Virus record (IMG/VR): IMGVR_UViG_3300028654_000384
Location: 124,001 to 188,000 of that record
Length of the DNA stretch: 64,000 bases
Strand: one strand, 5' to 3'
Positions 5,210 to 63,966 of this stretch are shown one piece after another. The position numbers were made by a program, and so were the translations under genes. Position 1 is the stretch's first letter; every line of letters begins with the position of its first letter. The notes under the pieces were generated by a model. The model was not told the origin of the DNA and made no database searches. It saw only the letters and a program-made list of their open reading frames with translations.

Positions 5210-6871
5210 ATGATTGAGGCCATGAACGACAATACCACGCACGTCATCTTTGCCGCGGACGCTCGTAAGCAACTGTGGGCCGGCATGAAGATTGCTGCCG
5301 ATGCCGTCACCACGACGTTGGGCCCTAAAGGTCGCACCGTCATCATCCAGCGCGCTAACCAATCCCCTCTGGTGACGAAGGACGGGATCACCGTCGCCAA
5401 GTCGATCAAGTTGAAAGATCCCGTCAAGCGGATGGGCGCCGAACTGATCCTCGAAGCTGCCAATCAGACCAATGAGGTCGCCGGTGACGGCACCACGACG
5501 GCCACGTGCCTGACGGCCGCGCTCGTCGCCGAAGGTTTGAAGCTGGTCGAAGGCGGCTTTAGCCCACTCGAGCTGTGCAAGGGCATTGAGGCAGCGACCG
5601 GGTTGGTGCTCGCCGCCCTCAAACAACAGGCGGTGCAGGTGTCAACCAGTGCTGCGGTCGCCCAAGTCGGTACCATCAGTGCCAACGGTGATGCACAGAT
5701 CGGCAAGTTGATCGCCGATGCCATGGAACACGTGGGCCGCGACGGCATCATCACCGTCGAGGACGCCAAGGGCATGGCCACGTCAATGTCAATCGCTGAT
5801 GGCATGCAGTTTGAACGCGGCTACATTAGCCCCTACTTCGTCACCGATGCAGAACGGATGCGGGCGACGTACGATGATGCCTTTGTCCTCGTCACTGACA
5901 AGAAGATCAGCAGCCTCAAGGAACTGATCCCACTGCTCGAGCGAGTGGTGCGGTTACAGAAGGGCCTGCTGATCATCGCTGAAGATGTCGACGGTGATGC
6001 ACTGACGGGCCTCGTCCTCAACCGCGTCAAGTCAGGCCTGCCCGTTGTCGCCATCAAGGCACCCGGTTACGGCCTGCACCGACAAGAGCTACTGCACGAC
6101 ATCTGCGTCATGACGGGTGCAACCCTCGTCTCCAGTGCCAACGGCCTGACACTCGACAAGGTCACTGACGCCAACTTGGGACGTGTCAAGCGCTTCAACA
6201 CCGACGCGAAGTCGACGACGCTCGTCGGGACGGGTGCTCAAAAGACGCACATTGACACCCACGTGGTTGAACTGCGCAAGCAGCTCGAGGACATCACTCT
6301 GGGGCAGGATGAGGTGACCAAGCTGAAGGTTCGCATTGCCAAGTTGGCCTCGGGCGTCGCCGTCATCCGCGTCGGCGGCGCGACCGAAGTCGAGATGACA
6401 GAGCGGCGCTTCCGCGTCGAGGATGCATTGAACGCGACGAAAGCGGCCGTCGAAGAGGGCATTGTGCCCGGTGGCGGCATGGCCTTCTACCACGCCGTCC
6501 ATGCAGTGAAGAGTACGACGGTCGATGAAGCCACCGGCGCCCACGATGAGCAGGCAGGCATGGGTGTCGTCTATCGGGCGTGCCTCGCGCCGCTCAAGCG
6601 CATCATTGAGAATGCAGGTGCCAGCTCTCCCGTGGTGCTGGCGGAATTGGCGCGCAGGGATGCCGCGGCACCGCTCATCAATGACAACATGGGTTACAAC
6701 GCGGCGACGGGTGAATACGTCGACCTCGTCACTGCCGGCGTCGTCGATCCTGTCAAGGTGGCACGGACTGCACTGAAGAACGCAGCATCAGTTGCTGTCA
6801 CCTTCCTCAGCCTCGACGCCGTGGTGTATGATGAACAGGTCACCAAGGAGCAACACGCTGATGAACAGTGA
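5210..6871 (+). CDS. groEL: chaperonin GroEL (Cpn60)
   Basis: TLGPKG, VTKDG, AGDGTTTAT, GMQFERGYISPYF, GIVPGGG, DPVKV motifs; 553 aa; no GGM tail. Confidence 0.97.
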   Translation: MIEAMNDNTTHVIFAADARKQLWAGMKIAADAVTTTLGPKGRTVIIQRANQSPLVTKDGITVAKSIKLKDPVKRMGAELILEAANQTNEVAGDGTTTATCLTAALVAEGLKLVEGGFSPLELCKGIEAATGLVLAALKQQAVQVSTSAAVAQVGTISANGDAQIGKLIADAMEHVGRDGIITVEDAKGMATSMSIADGMQFERGYISPYFVTDAERMRATYDDAFVLVTDKKISSLKELIPLLERVVRLQKGLLIIAEDVDGDALTGLVLNRVKSGLPVVAIKAPGYGLHRQELLHDICVMTGATLVSSANGLTLDKVTDANLGRVKRFNTDAKSTTLVGTGAQKTHIDTHVVELRKQLEDITLGQDEVTKLKVRIAKLASGVAVIRVGGATEVEMTERRFRVEDALNATKAAVEEGIVPGGGMAFYHAVHAVKSTTVDEATGAHDEQAGMGVVYRACLAPLKRIIENAGASSPVVLAELARRDAAAPLINDNMGYNAATGEYVDLVTAGVVDPVKVARTALKNAASVAVTFLSLDAVVYDEQVTKEQHADEQ

Positions 6872-13011: not shown

Positions 13012-13791
13012 TCAATACGTGTAGACGTCATCGCCGATCGGGAACAGTTTACGTTCAAAGCGTGACTCGCCACTGTGAACGGCACGCGCCTTGACGCTGA
13101 CCAACCTCTCATCGGGCAGCACATAGGCCCACAGCTCGCCGCCAAAGCAACAACCACCGTCGAGGCCCACCGCTTTCGGGGTGATCAATGGCCTATTGAG
13201 GACGCTGTGACCGAAGAAGATGCGCTCAGGCCCGTCCCAAAAGTGGTGCCAAAAGCGCCAACCTTCGTTGGGAGGAATGCGACTCGGCCACATCGACTTG
13301 TCGTTGATCCTCATCTGACCATCGGCACCAAAGTCGTAGGGACAGATGCACTGTATGTGGGTCAAGTGACGCACGGACTGGCGTTCGATGGGCACCCCTG
13401 GGAAGACGCCGGCATGGACGGCGACGGCGTTGAACTCTGGTAGACGCAGGTACAGTGGCAACCGCCTGAAGTAGTCGTAGTGCTCGGGACGGAGCTGTGA
13501 CCGGGTGACGACGTGAGACGGGGGTAGCTGACTCGGCAGCTTACCAGTGCGTGCCAGTACGTCTTCATGATCGAGGTGCCGGTGTTCATGGTTGCCCAGG
13601 ATGCAGGCGGGTTTGCCTTGTCGCGCTTCGATCCGCATCGCCAGGTCAACGCACTTGCCGCTCTCGGGACCTCGGTCGACGGTATCACCGAGGAAGATGA
13701 CCCAGTCTTCAGGACGCGCCTTGCACTTGTCGAGCAGTTCTTGTTGTTCTGCATAACAACCTTGAACATCACCCACTAGAATTGTGCGCAT
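13012..13791 (-). CDS. metallophosphoesterase, ApaH/PrpE-like (Ap4A hydrolase/phosphatase family)
   Basis: GDVQG, GDTVDRG, GNHE, VHAG, FGHS, DGGCCFGG motifs. Confidence 0.9.
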   Translation of the reverse strand: MRTILVGDVQGCYAEQQELLDKCKARPEDWVIFLGDTVDRGPESGKCVDLAMRIEARQGKPACILGNHEHRHLDHEDVLARTGKLPSQLPPSHVVTRSQLRPEHYDYFRRLPLYLRLPEFNAVAVHAGVFPGVPIERQSVRHLTHIQCICPYDFGADGQMRINDKSMWPSRIPPNEGWRFWHHFWDGPERIFFGHSVLNRPLITPKAVGLDGGCCFGGELWAYVLPDERLVSVKARAVHSGESRFERKLFPIGDDVYTY

Positions 13792-14639
13792 TGCCATTTG
13801 AACCCATATGCTGTTTCTTTTTCACCAGTCAAACACGCCTTAATTGTATCTTTATGGGCACCAATACCCAGCTCTTTTAGAGCTAACACAGCGTGTTTAA
13901 TTGATGAAAAGGTGGCGACGATATTGCCATTTAATGATAATTGATCAACTGCAATCCATGATGATTTCGTTTTCACTTTTGGAACATGAACGTCATCACC
14001 CGCCACTCTCCAATAAAAACCATGACTCAACATTACATGACCTATTTTAACAGGAATCACTCGTTGGGTGGCTTTTGTTAATCCTTGTTCACTTAACCAT
14101 ATTTGTACTGCGCTTCGAGAATCGTGTAATTCTAAAAACTGTCCATCAGTTGACCAACGTTCAATGCGTACTTTTTGTTGATTAGCACCTTGAGATCTAT
14201 TTTGAATTTCTTCATCAGTGTACGGTGCTTTACGCCAACCAACGTGACTTCTATATTTATGTGCTTGACGAATTTTCTCATTTGTTTCAGGCGTTGGTTT
14301 CTTATGCGTTTGTGGCTTTCTCGTATAGAAGTCTTGTCCACCTACAGTAAGATTGTAACCATATCCACCCATTCTGATGTTAGTATTTAATTTTGCGATC
14401 CAATAACGTTCACGATCATTGAGTTGTTCATCAGAACATTCTTCAATGACTTCATATTTGAAATTTTCAAATCCATGTTTGATTAACGCACCCAAAATTG
14501 GTCTGCCCAATTTATTGTACTTTTTATGATGCGTTGCACCGTATTTGTAATTGCGCCAATGTATTTCTGGATCGACTTTTGATTGACCAACATACAGCTT
14601 ATCATTGAGAATATTAAGAATCTTATAAATGTGACTCAT
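13776..14639 (-). mobile_element. freestanding GIY-YIG homing endonuclease with NUMOD3/IENR1-like C-terminal repeats
   Basis: HIYKI..LYVGQS..FKYEVIE..LNDRERYWI..GYN; two Q/R-x-S-x-x-G-x-x-x-x-x-x-S motifs; strongly AT-rich relative to flanks. Confidence 0.88.
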
Positions 14640-37619: not shown

Positions 37620-38155
37620 GGCTAGCAACACATCTCGCAGGTCGCTGCGGCCGAGCCAACCCAGGTGGGGGTTGGACCCGCGCGTTAAGATTGGGCGGGC
37701 GTGTGGTCGCACCACACGCAGGCGCGTGCATGTGATGATTGATCATTTGAGGGTGCGAGAGGGGCACTGATGTGTGGTAGGCACGTATGGTGATAGGCTA
37801 CGGTGTCCACGGTTTGACGGGCGCTGGAGGCTGCGTGAAGGGGTGAAAGGGGCACCATGAAGCGTGGAGGTGAACCGCGTGACGGCTGAGCATTGCGAGA
37901 GCATTCGTAACGAATATATTCGCTGTCGATCTGCGAGGTCGCAGCGAGAGAGCTCGTCGCCAAGTGAAGTGACTTCACCCATCCCCTCTGCGTCACACGG
38001 TGCGTCCGCCAAATCTGCCGCCCACGTGCTCAGTCTGGCTGCTGCAAATAGCCGACCCAACTGCACCTCCGCTCATGCGGGTGGGATTGTCTCGCACGTT
38101 GCTCGCGCATCGCGTCCTTCGTTGCAAGGCGCTGCTGGTCCAGGCATTGGGTGCA
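37620..38155. other. probable non-coding, hairpin-rich region
   Basis: No ORF with phage-like codon bias; hairpins CCAACCC/GGGTTGG, GTGTGGT/ACCACAC, GTGAAG/CTTCAC, palindrome CGAATATATTCG. Confidence 0.5.
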
Positions 38156-47495: not shown

Positions 47496-47531
47496 GTCTA
47501 TAATGGTCTTTCAACGCTAGAAAGCAGTGCA

Positions 47532-47702
47532 ATGCAGGTCTATAAGCACACGGAAATTCAGGCGGTGTTGGCCATGTTCTCCGCCTTCAACATCGAAGTT
47601 GAAGTGGTCGAGGGCGGTGCCAACCAACCCATGACGATCCACACCAAGTTGTTTCAACGCAAAGACGGAGAGTACGCTGATGAACCCGAAGAGACTGTTT
47701 AG
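47532..47702 (+). CDS. hypothetical protein (56 aa)
   Basis: TATAAT upstream; overlaps next start. Confidence 0.4.
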   Translation: MQVYKHTEIQAVLAMFSAFNIEVEVVEGGANQPMTIHTKLFQRKDGEYADEPEETV

Positions 47703-48798
47703 CTCGCTCGCCGCACTGCTGGTGGGGCTGGGCGTCGTTGGCACCGCCAGTGCGCAGGAAACGGGTCACGACAAGGATATTCACGATCGTGATTATTGCG
47801 ACAAGGTGCAGGCCCGCGCCCATGCTGATGCGTGGTTGTTGTTCTCGCCGTCGCTGCAGGTGCAGGGCATCAAGTACCCGGCGGGGGCACCGGGCGTCGT
47901 CGCGGTTGGTGGATCAGAAACTCCCGGTGGTTATCAGGTTCGTAGCTCACTATTGTGGAGCCCGCTCGATGCCTACAAGGGCACCGTCGAACAAGCCGTC
48001 GCAAATAAGGATTGCCTGCAACACTCGGCCATGGTCGATGCCCAAAATCTTTTGGAGATGATGAATGACGTCGGCCGAGCACCTGCATTGCAGGCCGAGG
48101 TGACGTACCTCAAGTTCCATGCCGACGATATGAACGACATTCTCACCAATGTGCATAAACGCCTTGTGATTGGTCACAGCACGATCATCGAACTCGCTGC
48201 TGTACAGGCAGGCATCGATCTGCTTGAACGCAAGCTCGCCGCAGCGCAGGGTCAACTGTCACTCATCGAAACGAAGGATTATGTCGTTACACCACGCTCG
48301 TCGACAGAGATCGTCGAGCGATTACAACGCTACTCAATGGAATATGAGAAAGAGACGGCACGACTCAGATCGATCGATCCATGGGCTATCAGCGTGTCAG
48401 GCGGCGTTGTCCCGCCCATGGGCGACGGTGGTTCGGCGGCGTGGTTTGGCATGGTGACGGTGCAGTATAATTTCGGGGGTTTCGTCCGCGGGGCTGATGA
48501 GAGCAAGTATCTCTCAGCCCGCCAGCACGAACTGCAATATGCTCGTTACGAACTTGCTGATCAGGTTCGGCGTTTACAAGATGGCATTCAGGTGGGCATC
48601 GAATCTGCGGATGCCGAAATCGTCACGCTTGACAAGCGTATCAGTGAACTTAATGACCTATGTGAGCAGTTAAAGCTTCATATTGAAGCACCCAATGCTA
48701 TGAGCACATTAGGCGTCGTTGAGCTTCAGCACATGGATGCGGTGAGTGATAGGTTGTACTTGATCGAACTACGTCGGCAATTGTCGGCGTGGAAGTGA
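47680..48798 (+). CDS. secreted TolC/outer-membrane-factor-like protein
   Basis: Sec signal (ASA|Q); two repeats of amphipathic beta-hairpin plus long coiled coils. Confidence 0.55.
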   Translation: MNPKRLFSSLAALLVGLGVVGTASAQETGHDKDIHDRDYCDKVQARAHADAWLLFSPSLQVQGIKYPAGAPGVVAVGGSETPGGYQVRSSLLWSPLDAYKGTVEQAVANKDCLQHSAMVDAQNLLEMMNDVGRAPALQAEVTYLKFHADDMNDILTNVHKRLVIGHSTIIELAAVQAGIDLLERKLAAAQGQLSLIETKDYVVTPRSSTEIVERLQRYSMEYEKETARLRSIDPWAISVSGGVVPPMGDGGSAAWFGMVTVQYNFGGFVRGADESKYLSARQHELQYARYELADQVRRLQDGIQVGIESADAEIVTLDKRISELNDLCEQLKLHIEAPNAMSTLGVVELQHMDAVSDRLYLIELRRQLSAWK

Positions 48799-48820
48799 TG
48801 AAAGTAACGAGAGAGGGAAT

Positions 48821-49909
48821 ATGACAATGGAACAGACCATGGAAACTGCACGCGCCTCTGCACAAATTAACGTGGGGCGGTTTTGGAAGACGCGTGTCTT
48901 CTCGTTTGTGGCATTAGCATCAATGGTGGGTGGCTGCGGCGCCATGGTGCGAGAGGGCTATTTTGTCACTACCGATTCCTTCGTTGCCCCGGCGATTTTG
49001 TCGCCTAATAACGATCTCGTCCTCGACGCACGTTTGAAGCTGGAACAAATCATGTTACAGAAGGGTATTGCCGAACAGGCATTGACGGAAGCCGAGGGCG
49101 ACATCAATGCAGGTGAACAAGCAACGATCAAGTTGATCGAATTGCGTGACACCATTAGTCATGCACTGACGTGGACCAGCAACTTGACAGGTGCGCAAGT
49201 GACGATGGGTAACGCCGATGTTAAGGTCATTGCGACACAGAAGGATGAGTTACAAAACATGATTGCTCGTCAAGAGCAGCTAGTTGAAGACGCTAAATTG
49301 AATATGAATGGCGGGTTGATCGCGCGTCCTGATTATGACCGCGAGGTGCAGGCGCTTGACTCGCTGAAACTAGCACAGTTCGAAAATGACAGGACGCGTA
49401 TGGCTAGCGACCTACAGTTGAAACAGGCTAGTATGGGTCAGCAGGCGCTACTTGCGGGTAAGGGCACCAAGATGCCGATGCCCGATCAGGTCATGGTATT
49501 GAACTCATTGATTACGGTCGAGGTGCAGTTGTTGCAGACGGAAGAATTGCAGAGAACGAAGATTGCTGAGAAGGAAAAAGATCAGGAAGAATTGAAGAAG
49601 ATTGAGTCGCTAGAGAGCGATCTGCGATCGCGGCCTATTTTCAAGGCAATTGATAGTAACGTAGATTTGAGCTTTGCACCATATTCTGCTTTGAAGAATA
49701 TTGTTGTGGGTGCGAAAGTGATGAATTGTGTTTGGGGAGTTTTCAATTGTAAGGAAGTTGGAAAAGTGAAAGAAATTATCTCTGGTGAGGCAGTTCTTCC
49801 CGCAATTTTTGGAACGGGGCAAACAAGAGGACAATTTATTGCAGTTGAGCTAAATGATGCAGATCATGATGCTTCAATGAAAAGTACGATTCTAAGAATC
49901 CGAAACTAA
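48821..49909 (+). CDS. HlyD/membrane-fusion-protein-like periplasmic adaptor
   Basis: N-terminal TM/lipobox-like GGC, long central coiled coil, beta-rich C-terminus. Confidence 0.55.
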   Translation: MTMEQTMETARASAQINVGRFWKTRVFSFVALASMVGGCGAMVREGYFVTTDSFVAPAILSPNNDLVLDARLKLEQIMLQKGIAEQALTEAEGDINAGEQATIKLIELRDTISHALTWTSNLTGAQVTMGNADVKVIATQKDELQNMIARQEQLVEDAKLNMNGGLIARPDYDREVQALDSLKLAQFENDRTRMASDLQLKQASMGQQALLAGKGTKMPMPDQVMVLNSLITVEVQLLQTEELQRTKIAEKEKDQEELKKIESLESDLRSRPIFKAIDSNVDLSFAPYSALKNIVVGAKVMNCVWGVFNCKEVGKVKEIISGEAVLPAIFGTGQTRGQFIAVELNDADHDASMKSTILRIRN

Positions 49910-49919
49910 AGGACATCAG

Positions 49920-51662
49920 ATGGATACTATTCTTTGGCGTTTGCATGATTCCATGCATCTTGCATGGGTTGTTATTTTTGCACTCGTAGTCAGTCTTTGT
50001 TTGCTCAACGTCCACTACATTCCTGTAGTATTTCGTACAGCATTCAGAAGGTTGGTATCTGGCAATTCTTCACATACGCCCAAGAATATGGGCAATTGCC
50101 CTACTGGACTTGTAATCATTCCATCGCTGCTTAGAAACGAAGAAGATTATACCGCCATCATTGCCACAGTAGAAAGTTGTGCTTCTAATCAATACCCCAA
50201 TGATTTGTATATCATAGTTAGTATTGATGGGAAGAACGAGAATCAAAAATTATTTGCACAACTAGCTAACTGGCTCGATTCAAGATCGTACTCTAACACT
50301 GTAAAACTGCACCTCACATATGATGAGGTTCGTCGTAGCAAAATGATGGCTATCGATCGTGGGGCACAGTATATGAAAGCCCTTGTTGCTAGTGGCGCGG
50401 TGTCATCCTTTCCCACCATCTATTTTAGCATCGACGCTGACTCTATTCTTAGTGAGCAAGCTCTCAATAGAATGGCATCTCAGCTAAATACTCCACACCC
50501 AATTACCGGTAACAAAAGGCGAACTATTGCCGGAACTCCGATGGTTCACTCGCACGTGTTATGGCAAGGTTGGCGCTCATTCTTTACGATTGAAAATCAG
50601 ATCTATCTCAATGTTGCTCGTATGTTTATGATGTCAGGTGTTGCTCGTAGCAATTTGGGTGTTATTCCTTACATTGGAGTGCCAGGAGCTATTTACGCTA
50701 CTTGGAGTGAGATTCTATTGGATGCTCCTAAGTTTATGGGTTACATAAGATCCATTACATTTATTGACTGGCTACGTTGGTGGGTGGGAATTCCTCTTCC
50801 TACGTTTGCAGAATCTAGCGCTGAGCCAATTCCTCAATTGTTGACAGGAAACACAGATGATACAAGTATGGCGGTTGTAATTTCAATCTCTACTTGGCAA
50901 GACAATAGGTTTGTTCTTGAGTTGCCAAGATCTCCACTTCATGCGTTTGGCAGATTGCTTCGCTCTTGGTTTATTGAACGAACGCATAATCACGATCCAG
51001 AATCGAAAGCTTATACTTATGTTCCTCCTTCTATTAAGGGATTGTGGCTTCAACGAAAACGATGGAACAGCTCGAGAATTGAATTAAATTTGAGATTCTC
51101 AAAAGCATTTTTGTTTTGCTGGGACACTGGATTTCCGTTTATGTTTCAGCTATCTATTGTTGGAATAATTTTCTTTCGAGTGTTGCTGACATACGTTATA
51201 ATTCCATTCGTCATATTTGGTGAAGCCTCCAACGTCTTCTATTGTTTGATGGTGGGTATGACGTTGAGTTTTATTTGTAATCTCATTCTTACATTGACCG
51301 CACTTGCAATGGATACTGAACGACGTAGATATTGGGCGGTGTTGCTTGCGTTACCAACGGCTGGTTTGTTTTCTCTCGTGTTCGGTGCAACCGTAGGTAT
51401 TTGGGGATTTATGAAAGACGTATTGTGGAAAGGAAACAATGTTAAATTCACACCAGCTTCTACGTTGATAACTGGTGGAAGTCAGCGAATTGCAATTGCA
51501 TTTCGTGTTCAGCGATTCCTATCAATGTGTATTCGTTCATTACGATATGGTGATGTTCCGTTCGGTCTTTGGTGGGGATCTTGGTATGAAAGAGTGCCCT
51601 ATGTTCGTAACGGTTATGCAGATTGGTCTAACAAAAAGAACAGTCAATACGTGCTAAAATGA
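49920..51662 (+). CDS. processive GT2 polysaccharide synthase (cellulose/chitin/hyaluronan-synthase fold)
   Basis: D (SIDG), DxD (SIDADS), TDD, QRKRW; N-terminal TM and several C-terminal TMs. Confidence 0.88.
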   Translation: MDTILWRLHDSMHLAWVVIFALVVSLCLLNVHYIPVVFRTAFRRLVSGNSSHTPKNMGNCPTGLVIIPSLLRNEEDYTAIIATVESCASNQYPNDLYIIVSIDGKNENQKLFAQLANWLDSRSYSNTVKLHLTYDEVRRSKMMAIDRGAQYMKALVASGAVSSFPTIYFSIDADSILSEQALNRMASQLNTPHPITGNKRRTIAGTPMVHSHVLWQGWRSFFTIENQIYLNVARMFMMSGVARSNLGVIPYIGVPGAIYATWSEILLDAPKFMGYIRSITFIDWLRWWVGIPLPTFAESSAEPIPQLLTGNTDDTSMAVVISISTWQDNRFVLELPRSPLHAFGRLLRSWFIERTHNHDPESKAYTYVPPSIKGLWLQRKRWNSSRIELNLRFSKAFLFCWDTGFPFMFQLSIVGIIFFRVLLTYVIIPFVIFGEASNVFYCLMVGMTLSFICNLILTLTALAMDTERRRYWAVLLALPTAGLFSLVFGATVGIWGFMKDVLWKGNNVKFTPASTLITGGSQRIAIAFRVQRFLSMCIRSLRYGDVPFGLWWGSWYERVPYVRNGYADWSNKKNSQYVLK

Positions 51663-52618
51663 AAATTTTATCGCTTATAGCTCTAGTACTGTCTTCGTGT
51701 GTAAGTAGCAATCTCTATTTTAGAGAAGTTCACGCTAAAAAGCCAACATTTTCATTAGAGGAGAAAAAAATGACAGTCATAAACAACGATTCTGTGCGTG
51801 GACTATTTGTGTGGGATGATGTTGCTAACTCAGAAGAGGAAATTACCAGTTTAGTAACTTTTTGTAAAGTAAAGGAAATCAACGTAGTATATGCATCATT
51901 GTATAGTCACTTACTTGTAAAAAAAGATTTTGTCGCAGTTCAAAATCTACTCAATAGTTTGCATTCCAACGGAATAAAAGTTCATGCATTGTTTGGTAAT
52001 TCAGATTACGGTTCCAAAAAACAATGGGTTGTTGAAAACGTTGGCGAAGCAGTAGTTCAATATAATTCAGTATCATCTGATAAAATCGATGGTGTGTTGC
52101 TAGACGCTGAGTATTGGTCTGGTAGTGCTGGACATCATACGCAAGCCGATGCGATAGGCATGATGGATCTAATAAGGGCACTAAAAATAAAAACTGGCAC
52201 GCCAGTTGGATTTAGCCCTCCGTACTGGTTTGCAGATCCTAAAAATAATCAAGCGCTGGACGTTGTTTATGATGGACACACAATGAAAGAAGGTCAGCAC
52301 ATGATTTATGTTGCGGACTACGTTGTAGTGCAGGACTATTTTAGTGATCCACAAAAACAGATTGAACATTTCAATCCGTGGTTTGATTTTGCAGTTTCTA
52401 CCGGTAGAAATGTTGGTTTGGTGTTGGCATCAGAAGTTAGTGAGCCATCGAAACTAGCTCATGCCTATTCCTATAATAGACTACAGGTGGGTGATGAGGC
52501 GCACATGCAGTCTAGCCTGGCCAGCGTTTCGCAATTCTATACAATGAAGCACGGTGCAGACAGGGTATGGTGGGGTTGTGCTATTGAGCAGTATCGTTCG
52601 TATCGTCAGATGAAGTAA
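51659..52618 (+). CDS. lipoprotein glycoside-hydrolase-like TIM barrel (GH18-like)
   Basis: Lipobox LSSC; RGLFVWD, KVHALFG, IDGVLLDAEYW; GTGA/ATGA-type overlap with synthase. Confidence 0.6.
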   Translation: MKILSLIALVLSSCVSSNLYFREVHAKKPTFSLEEKKMTVINNDSVRGLFVWDDVANSEEEITSLVTFCKVKEINVVYASLYSHLLVKKDFVAVQNLLNSLHSNGIKVHALFGNSDYGSKKQWVVENVGEAVVQYNSVSSDKIDGVLLDAEYWSGSAGHHTQADAIGMMDLIRALKIKTGTPVGFSPPYWFADPKNNQALDVVYDGHTMKEGQHMIYVADYVVVQDYFSDPQKQIEHFNPWFDFAVSTGRNVGLVLASEVSEPSKLAHAYSYNRLQVGDEAHMQSSLASVSQFYTMKHGADRVWWGCAIEQYRSYRQMK

Positions 52619-52930: not shown

Positions 52931-53971
52931 ATGTCGAAACGTATCATCACGGTGCTCGCCGCAATCGCGCTGGCATCAGTCACCTCCGCCGCATCGGCCG
53001 AGGACTTCTCGCTCCACGTCGAAGGCGGCCCGGCGCTTCAGCTCCGCGCCCCCAACGGCGACATCGTCGACCACAATCGCTTCAAGTTCGGCGCTAGTGG
53101 TGAGGTCGACGGCCTCATCGCCTTGATCCCCAACCTCGCAGTCGGTCCGACGGTGTCGGCGGTGTTTCTGCCGCAGTCCACCCCCAATACCGAAGGCGCT
53201 GTCATGTGGCAGTTCGACGGCACCGTCCGCCTGCAGGGCGCGCGCTCGGCCGGCTGGTCGCCCTACATTCAAGGTTCGCTCGGCGCTGCGAAACAGGCGG
53301 CGATCTGGAACCCGGGTTTCATGACGCAGGTCGGCGTCGACTTCGCCCTCAATCAGGAGCACTCGTCGTGGCTCGGCCTTTACGTGGGCTGGGACAAAGT
53401 GCTCGACACCTACAACGCCGCTGACAAGCAGACGGCGCTGCTCTCTCGCCAAGACACCAGCGTCGGCACCGCAGGCGTCAGCATGTCGTTCGACTTCCCG
53501 TCGAAGCACGCAAAGCGCACCCTCGGCGTCATCACGGTGCAGGAACCGGCACCCGCCTGCCCGCCCGCTCCCGCTGCCCCTGTCGCAGCGCCCGCTCCCG
53601 CGGCCGACGACGGCACGGCACTGTTGGCACCGTCGGTACAGTTCGACAAGGACAGCTTCGTTGTCAGCGCAGACGCTCAGGCGATGCTGACCGACTTCGC
53701 CTCGCAGTACAATGCTGCTCCCGGTGCGAAGAACTACATGCTGATGGTCGAGGGTTATGCCTCGTCGGAGTGCAGTGCGTGCGAAGTTACGCACAACCTC
53801 GTACTGTCGAATAGCCGCGCCAACGCGGTCGCAGACGTCCTCGTCAACAGTGGCAAGGTCGATCGCACCATGATCCACCCGGTCGCCTTCGGCGGCGTGG
53901 GCGCCCCGAACGATGCGAGCAACCGACGCGTCGACACGATTGTCATTCGCCTCGTGAAGATCCAGAAGTAA
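52931..53971 (+). CDS. OmpA family outer-membrane protein (beta-barrel + Pro/Ala hinge + OmpA_C)
   Basis: Signal peptide; amphipathic strands; VQFDKDS, VEGYAS, NLVLS..RANAV, NRRV; AAGGAG RBS. Confidence 0.9.
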   Translation: MSKRIITVLAAIALASVTSAASAEDFSLHVEGGPALQLRAPNGDIVDHNRFKFGASGEVDGLIALIPNLAVGPTVSAVFLPQSTPNTEGAVMWQFDGTVRLQGARSAGWSPYIQGSLGAAKQAAIWNPGFMTQVGVDFALNQEHSSWLGLYVGWDKVLDTYNAADKQTALLSRQDTSVGTAGVSMSFDFPSKHAKRTLGVITVQEPAPACPPAPAAPVAAPAPAADDGTALLAPSVQFDKDSFVVSADAQAMLTDFASQYNAAPGAKNYMLMVEGYASSECSACEVTHNLVLSNSRANAVADVLVNSGKVDRTMIHPVAFGGVGAPNDASNRRVDTIVIRLVKIQK

Positions 53972-61711: not shown

Positions 61712-62671
61712 ATGAGCCTCACCTTCCTTGTCTACGGCTGGTTCAACAAGCAAAACGTCGGCGATGAGCTGATGAAGCAGGCACTCCGCGTCATCTTTGA
61801 GCCCAAGAGCGTCGACCTGCGCTTCGTCGATCACATCAGTACCCAACAATTGGTGGGCGTCGATGCCGTCGTGTTCGGTGGTGGCAGCATCCTCTACGAT
61901 GATCCCGTCATCGATGCCGGAGTGTTGGCGGCGTTGTTGGCACGTGAAGTGCCCACCTTCTACGTCGGCGTGGGCGGCGAGACGGCGGTGGGCCGGGTAC
62001 ACCAACAATTACTCGACGTCGCCGAGCTCACCTTCTTTCGGGAGCTCGATGTACCTGACCTGGTCTATGCGTTGGAGCCCGACCTCAGCACGTTGGCCCA
62101 CCCGCCCAAGGGCGTGCTCTTCGTGCCCAACGTTGAGGTGGTGCCCACCCATGCCGAGCCACACTGGGCCCACGTGGCGTGGGAGCACTTCAAGAACGAG
62201 GTGGCACAGTGCCTCGATCAGTTCATCGATCGCGGCGTGCCCGTCTCCTTCCTGCTGATGTGCAACGGCGAACAGAAGCAGGACGCATGGCCTGCGGCCG
62301 AGCTGATGGGCAGGATGCTGCGACGAGCGCCTCGCCTGTGGACGTATGCAGCGACTGACCTGTCGATCACTCGCTTGATGCGACACTTTGAGTGTGTTGT
62401 CACGCAGCGTTATCACGGCATCATCCTGTCAGAACTGGCGGGGGTGCCCTACGTCAGCATCGCCCACCACGACAAATTGAAGCTCGCGCAACCACACCGA
62501 GGCCAGCACTTGGCATACCACGCCATGAATAAAGACATGCTGACGGATGCACTGGAATTGGCTCGCACCACGCCCATCGCGCCGCACCGTGTCCCGCGCA
62601 AGGTGTACGATGACATGGTCGATCAGATCATCAGCGTCGTCACCGGCGGAAGAAAGAGTGGGCACACATGA
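61712..62671 (+). CDS. polysaccharide pyruvyl transferase family protein (WcaK-like)
   Basis: GWF...NVGDELM, FGGGSIL, FRE, VPD, TQRYHG.I motifs. Confidence 0.8.
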   Translation: MSLTFLVYGWFNKQNVGDELMKQALRVIFEPKSVDLRFVDHISTQQLVGVDAVVFGGGSILYDDPVIDAGVLAALLAREVPTFYVGVGGETAVGRVHQQLLDVAELTFFRELDVPDLVYALEPDLSTLAHPPKGVLFVPNVEVVPTHAEPHWAHVAWEHFKNEVAQCLDQFIDRGVPVSFLLMCNGEQKQDAWPAAELMGRMLRRAPRLWTYAATDLSITRLMRHFECVVTQRYHGIILSELAGVPYVSIAHHDKLKLAQPHRGQHLAYHAMNKDMLTDALELARTTPIAPHRVPRKVYDDMVDQIISVVTGGRKSGHT

Positions 62672-63966
62672 ACAGGTTCGTTGCATCACGAAGAGGCAGC
62701 ATCTATGCAGTCTCCAGTGCCCCCATCGTGGCTCCCGATGCTGTCGACACCGAAGTCGTTGAAGTACCAGACGTCCACGCTGACGTCGACACCGCCATGT
62801 TGATCACACACTTTCGGGTGCGCGGCGGCAAGGTACAACCGCGACGGGGCTCACCCGGCACCGCCAGTGCGTTGAAGTTGGCGCTGGTCGGCAACTGGAA
62901 GATGCGGTGCGGCATTGCCACGTACAGCGAGAACCTGTGGCCCGAAATCGCCAAACACGTCGGCGACTTCAAGCTGTTCATCGAGAAGAATGAGCAACCC
63001 ACTGGGCCCACCAACGTCATCGGCGACGTCGCTGTCCCACCTGAGAAGGTGCTGGCGTGCTGGCGGAGGGGCGAGCCGCTGGCCGAGCTGGTGAAGGCGA
63101 TCAAGGACTATGAACCTGACGTGGTGCTAATTCAACACGAATTTGGCCTGTGGCCCAACGCAGGACACTGGCTGTCGCTGATGAGCCAGTTGAGCAACTA
63201 CCGCGTCATTGTGACGATGCACAGTGTGTTTCGACACCGTGACAAGACGATCGTCGAGGCGGCGATCCCCGAGATCGTGGTGCACCTCGAGGGCGCCAAG
63301 CGAGTGTTGAAAGAGGAGAAGGGGGTGCCCGGTGAGGTCTATGTCATCCCACACGGGTGTGCTCCAGTCACTGACGTTGAGCGCCTGTGGAATTTCTATA
63401 AGTCAGATCGAACGCTAATGCAATTCGGATTTGGCTTTAGATACAAGGGGTTTGAGCTGGCGATCAAGGCGACCGACGTGCTGCGGCGCAGGTACCCCGA
63501 CGTCTTCTTCACCGCGTTGTTCAGCGAGTCGCCTTACAACTTGATCGATCACCAGGTCTATTACGACGAATTGATGCACCTCGTCGATGACCTCGATCTC
63601 CATAACAACGTGGCAATCATCCGGGGTTACCAAAGCGACACTTCGCTTGACTCCTACATGCGGACGAATCAGGCGATCCTGTTTCCCTACATCAGTCACC
63701 CGGAACACGAAGTCTTCGGTGCCTCGGGCGCCGCGCGGCTGGCGATGTCGAAGATGGCACCCATCGTCACTACGAGTGTCAATCACTTCAGCGACTTGCC
63801 GACGTTGAAAGCAGACACCCCTGAACAGATCGCCGATGCTCTTGACGCGATGTTCTCCAATCCGATCGCTCGCAAAGTGCAGGTCGATCGGCAACTAGCT
63901 TACTTGAACGACAACACTTGGGCTCGGGTTGGCGTCCGCTATGTAGAACTGTTCACGAAGGTGTAG
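62668..63966 (+). CDS. GT4 (GT-B fold) glycosyltransferase
   Basis: CGIATYS..L, IQHEFG, TMHSV, VIPHG, FGF...KG.E, FPY, SGAARLAM. Confidence 0.85.
   Translation: MNRFVASRRGSIYAVSSAPIVAPDAVDTEVVEVPDVHADVDTAMLITHFRVRGGKVQPRRGSPGTASALKLALVGNWKMRCGIATYSENLWPEIAKHVGDFKLFIEKNEQPTGPTNVIGDVAVPPEKVLACWRRGEPLAELVKAIKDYEPDVVLIQHEFGLWPNAGHWLSLMSQLSNYRVIVTMHSVFRHRDKTIVEAAIPEIVVHLEGAKRVLKEEKGVPGEVYVIPHGCAPVTDVERLWNFYKSDRTLMQFGFGFRYKGFELAIKATDVLRRRYPDVFFTALFSESPYNLIDHQVYYDELMHLVDDLDLHNNVAIIRGYQSDTSLDSYMRTNQAILFPYISHPEHEVFGASGAARLAMSKMAPIVTTSVNHFSDLPTLKADTPEQIADALDAMFSNPIARKVQVDRQLAYLNDNTWARVGVRYVELFTKV

Follow-up and report, generated by a model that had tools for sequence, protein, structure and literature searches.

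Gene organization of the locus

Four tightly packed genes (p1 to p4), all on the + strand, lie in the window, the 64,000-nt stretch analyzed here (positions 124,001 to 188,000 of IMGVR_UViG_3300028654_000384). They are separated by gaps of 22 nt and 10 nt, followed by a 4-nt ATGA overlap between p3 and p4. The initial annotation had described four co-directional, coupled genes encoding a TolC-like signal-peptide protein, an MFP/HlyD-like adaptor, a multi-TM GT2, and a lipoprotein with a GH18-like motif. This observation was confirmed, and every sequence feature listed for the four proteins was found. The signal peptide of p1 ends in ASA|QE. One N-terminal TM helix is present in p2. D103, D172-A-D174, T312-D313-D314, and Q378-R-K-R-W382 are present in p3, as are D144-G-V-L-L-D149-A-E151 and an N-terminal MKILSLIALVLSSC lipobox-like signal in p4. 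The match is not due to chance, as each protein has homologues at E values of 1e-20 to 1e-195.

Table 1. Features of the locus (positions in the window)
Feature	Position	Strand	Length	Assignment
TATAAT	47499-47504			
Overlapping ORF	47532-47702	+	56 aa	Conserved; function unknown
p1	47680-48798	+	372 aa	Secreted protein with predicted TolC-type outer membrane factor (OMF) fold
p2	48821-49909	+	362 aa	Inner-membrane-anchored protein with predicted periplasmic adaptor (MFP) fold
p3	49920-51662	+	580 aa	Membrane-embedded processive-type GT2 synthase, by motifs, topology, and remote homology
p4	51659-52618	+	319 aa	Putative periplasmic or lipoprotein glycoside-hydrolase-like enzyme
p4, internal start	51770	+	282 aa	Alternative start of p4
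Low-GC segment	49450-52450			GC of 0.33-0.45, from about 0.58-0.60

The start of p1 is overlapped by a small ORF without TM segments or a Pfam hit. Its product is 71% identical to the ORF at the same position in locus L005 and 50% identical to that in locus L042, and it was not found beside bacterial modules. The motif surrounding the TATAAT sequence is not repeated in the window. The lipoprotein start of p4 competes with the internal start, which is preceded by a strong AGGAG Shine-Dalgarno sequence and was chosen by public gene callers. The GC content is 0.41 for p3 and 0.40-0.47 for p2 to p4, compared with 0.575 for the window, indicating that the module is compositionally foreign to its carrier.

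Predicted structures and family assignments

The initial annotation had named structure predictions unlike OMF and MFP folds as grounds for rejecting its reading, and we modeled p1 and p2 using AlphaFold2 and compared the models with the PDB using Foldseek. The p1 model (pLDDT 88, pTM 0.75) showed two repeats of a beta-hairpin plus helices of roughly 70 residues, and the top 38 PDB hits were all OMFs (CusC, VceC, SilC, TolC, OprM, and others; E values of 3e-10 to 4.5e-4, probability of 1.0). By sequence, p1 does not belong to the OEP family (PF02321): none of 24 family members had an OEP hit at E≤0.01 or any other Pfam hit, and no PDB sequence was matched. Its Sec signal peptide and invariant Cys pair (Cys40/Cys112) are consistent with periplasmic exposure, whereas formation of a homotrimer with a 12-stranded barrel was not modeled. 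The p2 model (pLDDT 89) showed a helical hairpin of about 200 residues flanked by split beta domains, with the invariant Cys303 and Cys310 in the C-terminal beta domain. All eight PDB hits with E<1e-3 were adaptors (EmrA 4tko at 7e-7, EmrAB-TolC, and MacA), and HlyD scored 4e-3; the TM-scores were low (0.2-0.3) because of the elongated shape. The TM helix at about residues 25-43, modeled as helix 18-51, provides the N-terminal inner-membrane anchor. No Pfam family, including the HlyD families, was found in any of 24 members of the p2 family, and a 24-sequence profile searched against PDB sequences retrieved only coiled-coil noise.

The catalytic signature of processive membrane GT2 synthases (D103, D172xD174, D313-D314, and Q378RxRW382) was invariant across 24 homologues of p3. 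Hydropathy indicated one N-terminal and at least three C-terminal TM segments flanking a cytosolic GT-A domain, although a glycan channel was not modeled. Matches to GT2 family models were mixed and leave formal family membership unsettled. The p3 protein had no Pfam hit and only weak NCBIfam hits far below cut-offs (PgaC at 2e-8 and NodC at 9e-5), whereas 13 of 24 homologues matched PF13641 and 9 of 24 matched PF13632. An hhalign comparison gave a probability of 92.7% against E. coli PgaC and only 2% against BcsA, and neither p3 nor its 24-sequence profile matched any PDB sequence. The GT2 assignment of this divergent protein thus rests on the motifs and on its homologues. No PilZ or known c-di-GMP domain was detected in 24 members; a conserved Arg-rich C-terminal tail (R523, R529, R532, and R539) was observed but not analyzed further, so that the presence of a c-di-GMP receptor is neither supported nor excluded. 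Production and translocation of a polymer by p3 were not assayed.

Exhaustive HMMER searches retrieved 106 homologues of p4, which belongs to an unannotated family. The family profile matched PDB 10yv_A, described as "putative GH97 from Cellulomonas fimi", over its full length (E value of 6.7e-23; positions 25-296 of 299 against residues 6-271 of 275). No Pfam hit, including GH97, was found in 35 members, and it was not ascertained whether 10yv is a true GH97 or an active hydrolase. The GH18 affinity proposed in the initial annotation was rejected: the conserved FDGxxxDxEYW motif lacks the middle Asp of DxxDxDxE and differs in spacing, there was no Glyco_hydro_18 match, and chitinase sequences in the PDB matched only at E values of 0.057-0.49. 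The TIM barrel and the lipoprotein status of p4 are inferred, as its fold was not modeled and its export depends on the uncertain start codon. Many homologues lack signal peptides, and some are domains of 550-1650-aa proteins.

Distribution and genomic context of the module

A search for the same synteny, which had been suggested in advance for phage and Myxococcota genomes, showed that p1 to p3 form a conserved operon found otherwise only in Myxococcota (31 species-representative loci), often in 2-3 copies per genome. The p1-p2-p3 order, with the synthase gene next to the adaptor gene, is kept in nearly all of the 31 Myxococcota loci, 37 metagenome loci, and other phage-like contigs. The conserved unit is three genes plus a variable slot after the synthase, and not the fixed four-gene set initially described. 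The slot holds p4, GH16, an unknown 240-aa protein, or NDP-sugar 6-dehydrogenases. A p4 homologue with 38% identity occupies the slot in another phage-like module.

At least ten low-GC, phage-like contigs carry the module, which is mosaic. The p1, p2, and p3 sequences of these carriers each form one clade (SH-aLRT 99-100) with deep internal branches and intact catalytic residues, which speaks for long-term retention; composition bias, which was flagged in the tree analyses, could inflate this support. The GC content of the carrier (0.575; relatives 0.37-0.51) is far below that of Myxococcota (0.64-0.74), and the host is unknown.

That the locus might be bacterial or chimeric had also been named beforehand as a refuting outcome. 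The locus is not chimeric, as the same flanks appear in ENA, JGI, Logan, and IMG/VR assemblies. The carrier looks like a huge phage: two IMG/VR UViGs carry the identical locus, and contigs of 359,321 bp and 361,059 bp are linearized at different points, indicating a circularly permuted element of ~360 kb that was assembled independently many times. Phage-type genes lie nearby, including T4-type dNMP kinase (phrog_139), endonuclease VII, and DenV-like (phrog_624) genes and a GIY-YIG homing endonuclease gene. One gene is 35% identical to that of a published 595-kb phage (LR756511.1), and GroEL relatives are located on 200-345-kb contigs. No capsid, portal, terminase, or tail gene was seen in the 84 kb examined (contig positions of about 110-192 kb of 359 kb; the remainder was not read), and only 2 of 46 further window ORFs matched PHROGs. 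Substrate-supply and other envelope genes on the same genome encode UDPGP, an OmpA-like protein, a CsaB-like pyruvyl transferase, and a GT4, in favor of the reading given below.

Proposed function of the module

The best explanation, to which we assign a probability of roughly 0.7, is that the locus encodes a self-contained, tripartite synthase-dependent polysaccharide secretion machine carried as an accessory module by a ~360-kb huge phage. In this model, p3, an inverting GT2 in the inner membrane, would polymerize a beta-linked glycan from UDP-sugars and thread it through its own TM channel. The adaptor p2, anchored beside p3, would assemble through its very long hairpin into a periplasmic tube, and p1 would supply the outer-membrane exit as a TolC-like trimer. 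Then p4, probably exported as a lipoprotein, would trim or release the polymer, as BcsZ, PgaB, and PelA do in other synthase systems. Of these elements, the folds of p1 and p2 are shown by the models, whereas the activity of p3 is inferred from its family, and the p2 oligomer, the docking of p1, and the role of p4 are inferred as well. No polymer, complex, or expression has been observed, and all interactions are deduced from gene order and monomer folds.

Related modules carry NDP-sugar 6-dehydrogenases (one TviB-like), heparinase II/III-like lyases, or GH16 enzymes instead of p4, and in this view, the family probably makes variable polymers that often contain uronic acid or HexNAc. This copy lacks the dehydrogenase seen in its relatives, and its product is unknown. 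We infer that the phage uses the module to re-coat the infected diderm cell during a long infection, with masking of receptors against competing phages as the most likely purpose, although this is a guess. The initial interpretation, that the phage makes an infected Gram-negative cell secrete a polysaccharide coat, was supported in every element that could be tested, including the link to Myxococcota; its proposed purposes (superinfection exclusion, protection, or aggregation) remain pure inference.

Comparison with known systems

No comparable phage system was found in 50,697 GenBank phages, BFVD, or the literature searched, in agreement with the initial annotation, which knew of no complete set in a bacteriophage. 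Among cellular systems, BgsA-BgsB(-TolC) of Sinorhizobium meliloti, which makes a mixed-linkage beta-glucan, also pairs a processive GT2 synthase with an HlyD-type membrane fusion protein, and a TolC-type channel is genetically required in a proposed tripartite conduit (PMC13438883). There, TolC is the housekeeping channel encoded elsewhere, and its role may be indirect, whereas a dedicated OMF gene heads the operon described here and the carrier is a phage; no detectable sequence similarity was found, p2 and p1 having no Pfam HlyD or OEP hits. The cyanobacterial cellulose system (Maeda et al. 2018, via PMC12430437 and PMC8892547) comprises the synthase XcsA, the HlyD-like XcsB, and the endoglucanase XcsC, sometimes in one operon, with a proposed TolC-like exit. 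Its TolC-like gene is not in the operon, reviewers call the model unvalidated, and its synthase is a BcsA homologue with PilZ, whereas p3 is closer to PgaC/NodC-type GT2s.

Chloroviruses encode hyaluronan or chitin synthases with UDP-Glc dehydrogenase and GFAT, and a virus-encoded processive GT2 thereby re-coats the infected cell. Relatives of the present module likewise carry NDP-sugar 6-dehydrogenases next to the synthase. The chlorovirus host is eukaryotic and needs no export apparatus, and no sequence relationship was shown here. Jumbo cyanophages carry surface-glycan (LPS/capsule) gene clusters proposed to block superinfection (PMC7824862), but these are sets of soluble glycosyltransferases and sugar-modifying enzymes that feed host pathways, without a synthase, adaptor, or outer-membrane channel. 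Tripartite efflux pumps and type I secretion systems (EmrAB-TolC, MacAB-TolC, and HlyBD-TolC) match in their OMF and adaptor folds and in the N-terminal TM anchor and long hairpin of the adaptor. In these systems, the inner-membrane partner is an MFS or ABC transporter rather than a glycosyltransferase, and p1 is shorter than their OMFs (372 aa against about 430-490).

Alternative interpretations

Of the alternatives, a different role of p4 survives best, although we consider it unlikely. In this reading, p4 would be a depolymerase aimed at the pre-existing surface glycan of the host, clearing the surface or helping release, or a cytoplasmic enzyme made from the internal start. The strong Shine-Dalgarno sequence, the homologues lacking signal peptides or embedded in larger proteins, and the absence of p4 from most modules are in its favor. 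However, p4-like genes sit immediately after the synthase in this phage, in the P0008/P0079 contig, and in the bacterial locus L029. The same slot holds GH16 or the 240-aa protein in other modules, which is the usual pattern of a cognate glycanase in synthase operons, and the ATGA coupling and the lipoprotein-like signal precede the domain.

It is less likely that the carrier is a megaplasmid, another mobile element, or a reduced symbiont, in which case the module would be an ordinary cellular EPS operon on a mobile element. The lack of structural hallmark genes in the 84 kb and the predominance of ORFans are compatible with this reading. GroEL, OmpA, DNA glycosylases, and eIF-1a also occur in cells, and IMG/VR membership is a pipeline call that we did not verify. 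The phage-type genes, the circular permutation, and the similarity to the 595-kb phage argue against it, as do the tiny co-directional ORFs without Pfam hits, which are typical of huge phages. No tRNA genes and nothing cell-like (ribosomal or core metabolic genes) appeared in the window or its flanks.

Similarly doubtful is the possibility that p1-p2 and p3 do not form one conduit, with p3 making a periplasmic or membrane-associated glycan (as with osmoregulated or cyclic glucans, or Nod-factor-like oligomers) and p1-p2 serving another inner-membrane partner or exporting something else. The best family hits of p3 include NodC, an oligosaccharide synthase, and direct TolC involvement is unproven even for BgsAB (PMC13438883); multimers were not modeled here. 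However, no other transporter gene is conserved with p1-p2, and the three genes stay adjacent and co-oriented in Myxococcota and phage-like loci across large divergence (25-60% identity) and share one tree shape at the clade level. In addition, p2 resembles EmrA and HlyD, adaptors for inner-membrane partners that lack periplasmic domains, which fits a GT2.

A recently acquired, non-functional passenger, as might be suggested by the foreign GC content and the missing dehydrogenase, is very unlikely, as all ORFs are intact, every invariant catalytic residue and every Cys pair is retained, the identical sequence appears in many independent samples, and the phage-type clade is old and diverse.

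Gene organization and composition

All four genes of the module were found on the + strand exactly where the initial annotation had placed them, and its observation held. They are separated by 22 nt (p1-p2), 10 nt (p2-p3), and a 4-nt ATGA overlap (p3-p4). The catalytic motifs it had described were also present: p3 has D103, D172-A-D174, T312-D-D314, and Q378-RKR-W382, and p4 has D144-GVLL-D149-A-E151. A 56-aa ORF overlapping the start of p1 is conserved with the module in two relatives, at 71% and 50% identity. The window averages 0.575 GC, but GC falls stepwise across the module, with the step inside p2 near 49450. A search for a phage-specific promoter motif around the TATAAT upstream of p1 showed that this motif is unique in the window, and a generic promoter and terminator scan performed no better than on shuffled sequences.

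Positions of the genes and sequence features discussed in the text (window coordinates unless a contig is named)
Feature	Position	Strand	Length	GC	Details
GroEL	5210-6871	+			phrog_5725, 6e-146
GIY-YIG homing endonuclease	13776-14639	-		0.37	GC3 0.27; phrog_314, 1.7e-26
Start of the 361-kb JGI contig	~37119
Divergent strand switch	37767/37864				minus-strand genes end at 37767, plus-strand genes start at 37864
TATAAT	47499
Small ORF	47532-47702		56 aa
p1	47680-48798	+	372 aa	0.55	predicted OMF
p2	48821-49909	+	362 aa	0.47	predicted periplasmic adaptor
p3	49920-51662	+	580 aa	0.41	GT2 synthase
p4	51659-52618	+	319 aa	0.40	hydrolase-like
Alternative start of p4	51770
OmpA-like protein	52931-53971	+			PF00691, 1.8e-12; phrog_7897
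CsaB-like polysaccharide pyruvyl transferase	61712-62671	+			TIGR03609, 6e-11, below cut-off
GT4-like glycosyltransferase	62668-63966	+
UDPGP-family nucleotide-sugar pyrophosphorylase	L044:2500-3564				PF01704; same contig, ~6 kb left of window base 1
x240	L005:12754-13497, L041:12827-13531, L009:9914-10630, and others		~240 aa		no Pfam or NCBIfam hit
TnpB/Cas12f-like (OrfB_IS605) genes	L005:3901-5067 and L005:16788-17981

Predicted structures and families of the four proteins

Sequence methods were almost blind to the module. Direct searches of p1, p2, and p4 against Pfam, PHROG, and PDB sequences gave no hits, and profiles of p1 and p2 did no better. p3 had only sub-threshold NCBIfam hits, to PgaC (2e-8) and NodC (9e-5). 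Thus, we collected homologues from related loci and predicted the structures of p1 and p2, and only structure prediction resolved these proteins.

The initial annotation had named predictions unlike an OMF or an MFP as evidence against it, and both models came out in its favor. The p1 model (pLDDT 88) has two repeats of a beta-hairpin followed by roughly 70-residue helices, and its 38 best PDB matches are all outer membrane factors (CusC, VceC, SilC, TolC, OprM, OprN, CmeC, and MtrE), with E values from 3e-10 to 4.5e-4. p1 also has a Sec signal peptide and an invariant Cys pair. The p2 model (pLDDT 89) has an N-terminal TM helix, a helical hairpin of about 200 residues, and a small beta domain. 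All eight PDB matches below E 1e-3 are periplasmic adaptors (EmrA at 7e-7, EmrAB-TolC, and MacA), and HlyD follows at 4e-3.

For p3, the D, DxD, DD, and QRxRW residues were invariant across 24 homologues, 13 of which hit Pfam Glyco_tranf_2_3. The hhalign comparison gave a probability of 92.7% against E. coli PgaC and 2% against BcsA, and the p3-family profile (A1) found nothing among PDB sequences. Hydropathy showed one N-terminal and at least three C-terminal TM segments.

For p4, a word-indexed homologue search found only p4 itself, whereas an exhaustive HMMER search retrieved 106 homologues; none of the members searched against Pfam carried an annotation. The family profile matched PDB 10yv ('putative GH97 from Cellulomonas fimi') over its full length at E 6.7e-23, while chitinases matched only marginally, and hhalign of the family alignment (A4) against PgaB was negative. 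The conserved FDGxxxDxEYW block resembles the GH18 strand-4 motif but does not satisfy it, and a GH18 assignment for p4 was considered and rejected on the basis of the Pfam and PDB profile results. p3 and p4 were not modeled, so the TIM barrel of p4 lacks structural confirmation. The lipoprotein reading of p4 depends on its start at 51659, which is supported by coupling to the p3 stop codon, a textbook signal and LSSC lipobox, and a hydrophobic N-terminus in the nearest syntenic homologue. The competing start has a strong Shine-Dalgarno sequence and was chosen by public gene callers.

Relatives and synteny

A search of Myxococcota and phage genomes for the same gene order had been proposed in advance as a check on the system. 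A scan of one genome per GTDB species found 31 loci, of which 30 are titled Myxococcota (Polyangiaceae, Kofleriaceae, Labilithrix, and others); one is titled 'uncultured proteobacterium' but nests among the Myxococcota sequences. In nearly all loci, the order p1-p2-p3 is kept with overlapping or abutting genes, and several genomes have two or three copies. DNA searches against GenBank phages were empty, and none of the four proteins had a tblastn match in 50,697 GenBank phage records.

The position after p3 is variable. It can hold an unannotated protein of ~240 aa (x240; at least 8 bacterial loci), NDP-sugar 6-dehydrogenases, heparinase II/III-like lyases, GH16, or, in one bacterial locus, a p4-like gene. 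x240 follows the synthase in many bacterial and phage-like modules and is probably another polymer-processing or polymer-modifying enzyme. The long dehydrogenase type is closest to TviB, a UDP-GlcNAc 6-dehydrogenase (464 bits, below the 592-bit cut-off), and UGDH-like dehydrogenases also occur in this slot. The GH16 type is closest to endo-1,3-1,4-beta-glycanases. Taken together with the affinity of p3 for PgaC and NodC, this suggests beta-linked polymers that vary between modules and often contain uronic acids and/or HexNAc. The product of the present copy was not identified; a UDP-sugar dehydrogenase or x240 gene was sought in the window and its flanks (84 kb) and none was found. The variable slot further suggests a reservoir of unknown polysaccharides and matching glycanases.

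The carrier element

A chimeric contig at this locus had been named as a condition that would overturn the annotation. The identical locus with identical flanks occurs in ENA, JGI, and Logan assemblies and in two IMG/VR UViGs, so it is not a chimera. Two near-full-length contigs (359,321 bp and 361,059 bp) are linearized at different points, with the synthase at 168 kb in one and at 12.8 kb in the other, which indicates a circular or circularly permuted genome of about 360 kb. The start of the 361-kb JGI contig lies close to a divergent strand switch and a change of GC-skew sign, which may be an origin or terminus, or only an assembly break.

The neighborhood consists of small co-directional ORFans, together with GroEL, an AAA ATPase, and a GIY-YIG homing endonuclease. 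The flanks of the window on the 359-kb contig (L043 and L044) encode a T4-type dNMP kinase (phrog_139), endonuclease VII, a DenV-like pyrimidine-dimer glycosylase, Fapy and HhH DNA glycosylases, NUDIX, an eIF-1a-like protein, and Band_7 and Trypsin_2 proteases, an unusually rich repair and host-interaction repertoire. No capsid or terminase gene was seen in the 84 kb examined, and phage identity is therefore well supported but not proven. No host could be inferred from GroEL, whose nearest relatives (60-71% identity) lie on metagenomic contigs of up to 200-345 kb, and there are no tRNAs in the window. These relatives point to a large uncultured clade of GroEL-bearing huge elements. One window protein, the GT4-like glycosyltransferase, is 35% identical to a gene of the published 595-kb phage LR756511.1.

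Phage-type modules

Nine further low-GC (0.37-0.51) contigs carry the module. Those long enough to judge show phage-like gene density, and one is 160.6 kb. In these contigs, p1-p2-p3 is followed by dehydrogenase plus x240, by GH16 (in two of them followed by a dehydrogenase), or by a p4-like gene plus dehydrogenase.

In the trees of p1, p2, and p3, the low-GC carriers formed a single clade each time (SH-aLRT 99-100), although composition bias is a caveat for this support. For p3, the clade is sister to a Polyangiaceae-rich clade inside the Myxococcota radiation. Internal branches are long and the catalytic residues stay invariant, and the module has therefore been kept under selection in these elements for a long time. 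Within the clade, the p1 and p2 trees group the window with the low-GC carriers L005 and L042, while the p3 tree pairs L005 with L052, and L042 with L060-L065. Together with the GC step inside p2, this points to recombination that swapped the p3-p4 end between phages; the donor was not found.

Proposed mechanism and comparison with known systems

The interpretation in the initial annotation, a phage-encoded system for polysaccharide synthesis and secretion, was supported. The best-supported reading is a tripartite, synthase-dependent secretion machine. In this view, p3 would polymerize the glycan and translocate it across the inner membrane, a p2 oligomer would bridge the periplasm, a p1 trimer would form the outer-membrane exit, and p4 would act as the cognate periplasmic glycanase. 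The EmrA/HlyD-like architecture of p2 suits an inner-membrane partner that has no periplasmic domain. The folds, the motifs, and the conserved gene order are shown, whereas complex formation, polymer identity, p4 activity, and the biological purpose are inferred. As to purpose, we favor receptor masking or superinfection exclusion during a long infection, by analogy with the surface-glycan clusters of jumbo cyanophages (PMC7824862). The hyaluronan and chitin coats of chloroviruses offer a second analogy. Aggregation or protection from predators is equally untested.

The closest described systems are BgsA-BgsB with TolC in S. meliloti (PMC13438883) and cyanobacterial XcsA-XcsB with a TolC-like protein plus the XcsC glucanase (PMC12430437, PMC8892547). 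In both, the channel gene lies outside the operon. Reviews state that the proposed tripartite GT2-HlyD-TolC export route (cyanobacterial cellulose and rhizobial mixed-linkage glucan) lacks validation, partly because the channel gene is never in the operon. What differs here is that a dedicated OMF heads the operon, that none of the 24 p1 or 24 p2 family members tested has a Pfam hit, and that the carrier is a phage. The compact three-gene operon, found in Myxococcota and phages, is a portable and directly testable version of that route. BFVD contained no OMF-like fold at E<=0.001, and literature searches found no phage or Myxococcota report of such a system. The finding would extend what phages are known to encode, from soluble glycan-modifying enzymes to a complete envelope-spanning secretion system with its own outer-membrane channel.

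A more far-reaching reading, which we consider slightly less likely than not, is that huge phages build their own trans-envelope glycan-secretion nanomachine, including what would be the first virus-encoded TolC-type outer-membrane channel, and use it to cover the infected cell with a phage-specified polymer, possibly glycosaminoglycan-like and containing HexNAc or uronic acid. The same operon family in Myxococcota would then define a distinct, self-contained route for synthase-dependent polysaccharide export, in which a dedicated OMF and adaptor replace the TPR/beta-barrel porins, and this would give genetic proof of the still-unvalidated tripartite synthase model.

Other envelope-, glycan-, and mobility-related genes

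The OmpA-like protein encoded downstream of the module has a signal peptide, a probable beta-rich N-terminal half, a Pro/Ala linker, and a C-terminal OmpA peptidoglycan-binding domain. OmpA-like genes recur next to the module in phage-like contigs (two in L041 and one in the P0008/P0079 contig) but not in the bacterial loci, which suggests wider envelope remodeling by these phages. The overlapping pair of CsaB-like and GT4-like genes forms a second glycan-related unit 9 kb downstream of the module, and the UDPGP-family gene on the same phage genome is a possible supplier of UDP-sugar for the synthase. The GIY-YIG homing endonuclease gene is a second low-GC island in the window, and TnpB/Cas12f-like genes sit within L005, the related low-GC phage-like contig that carries the module.
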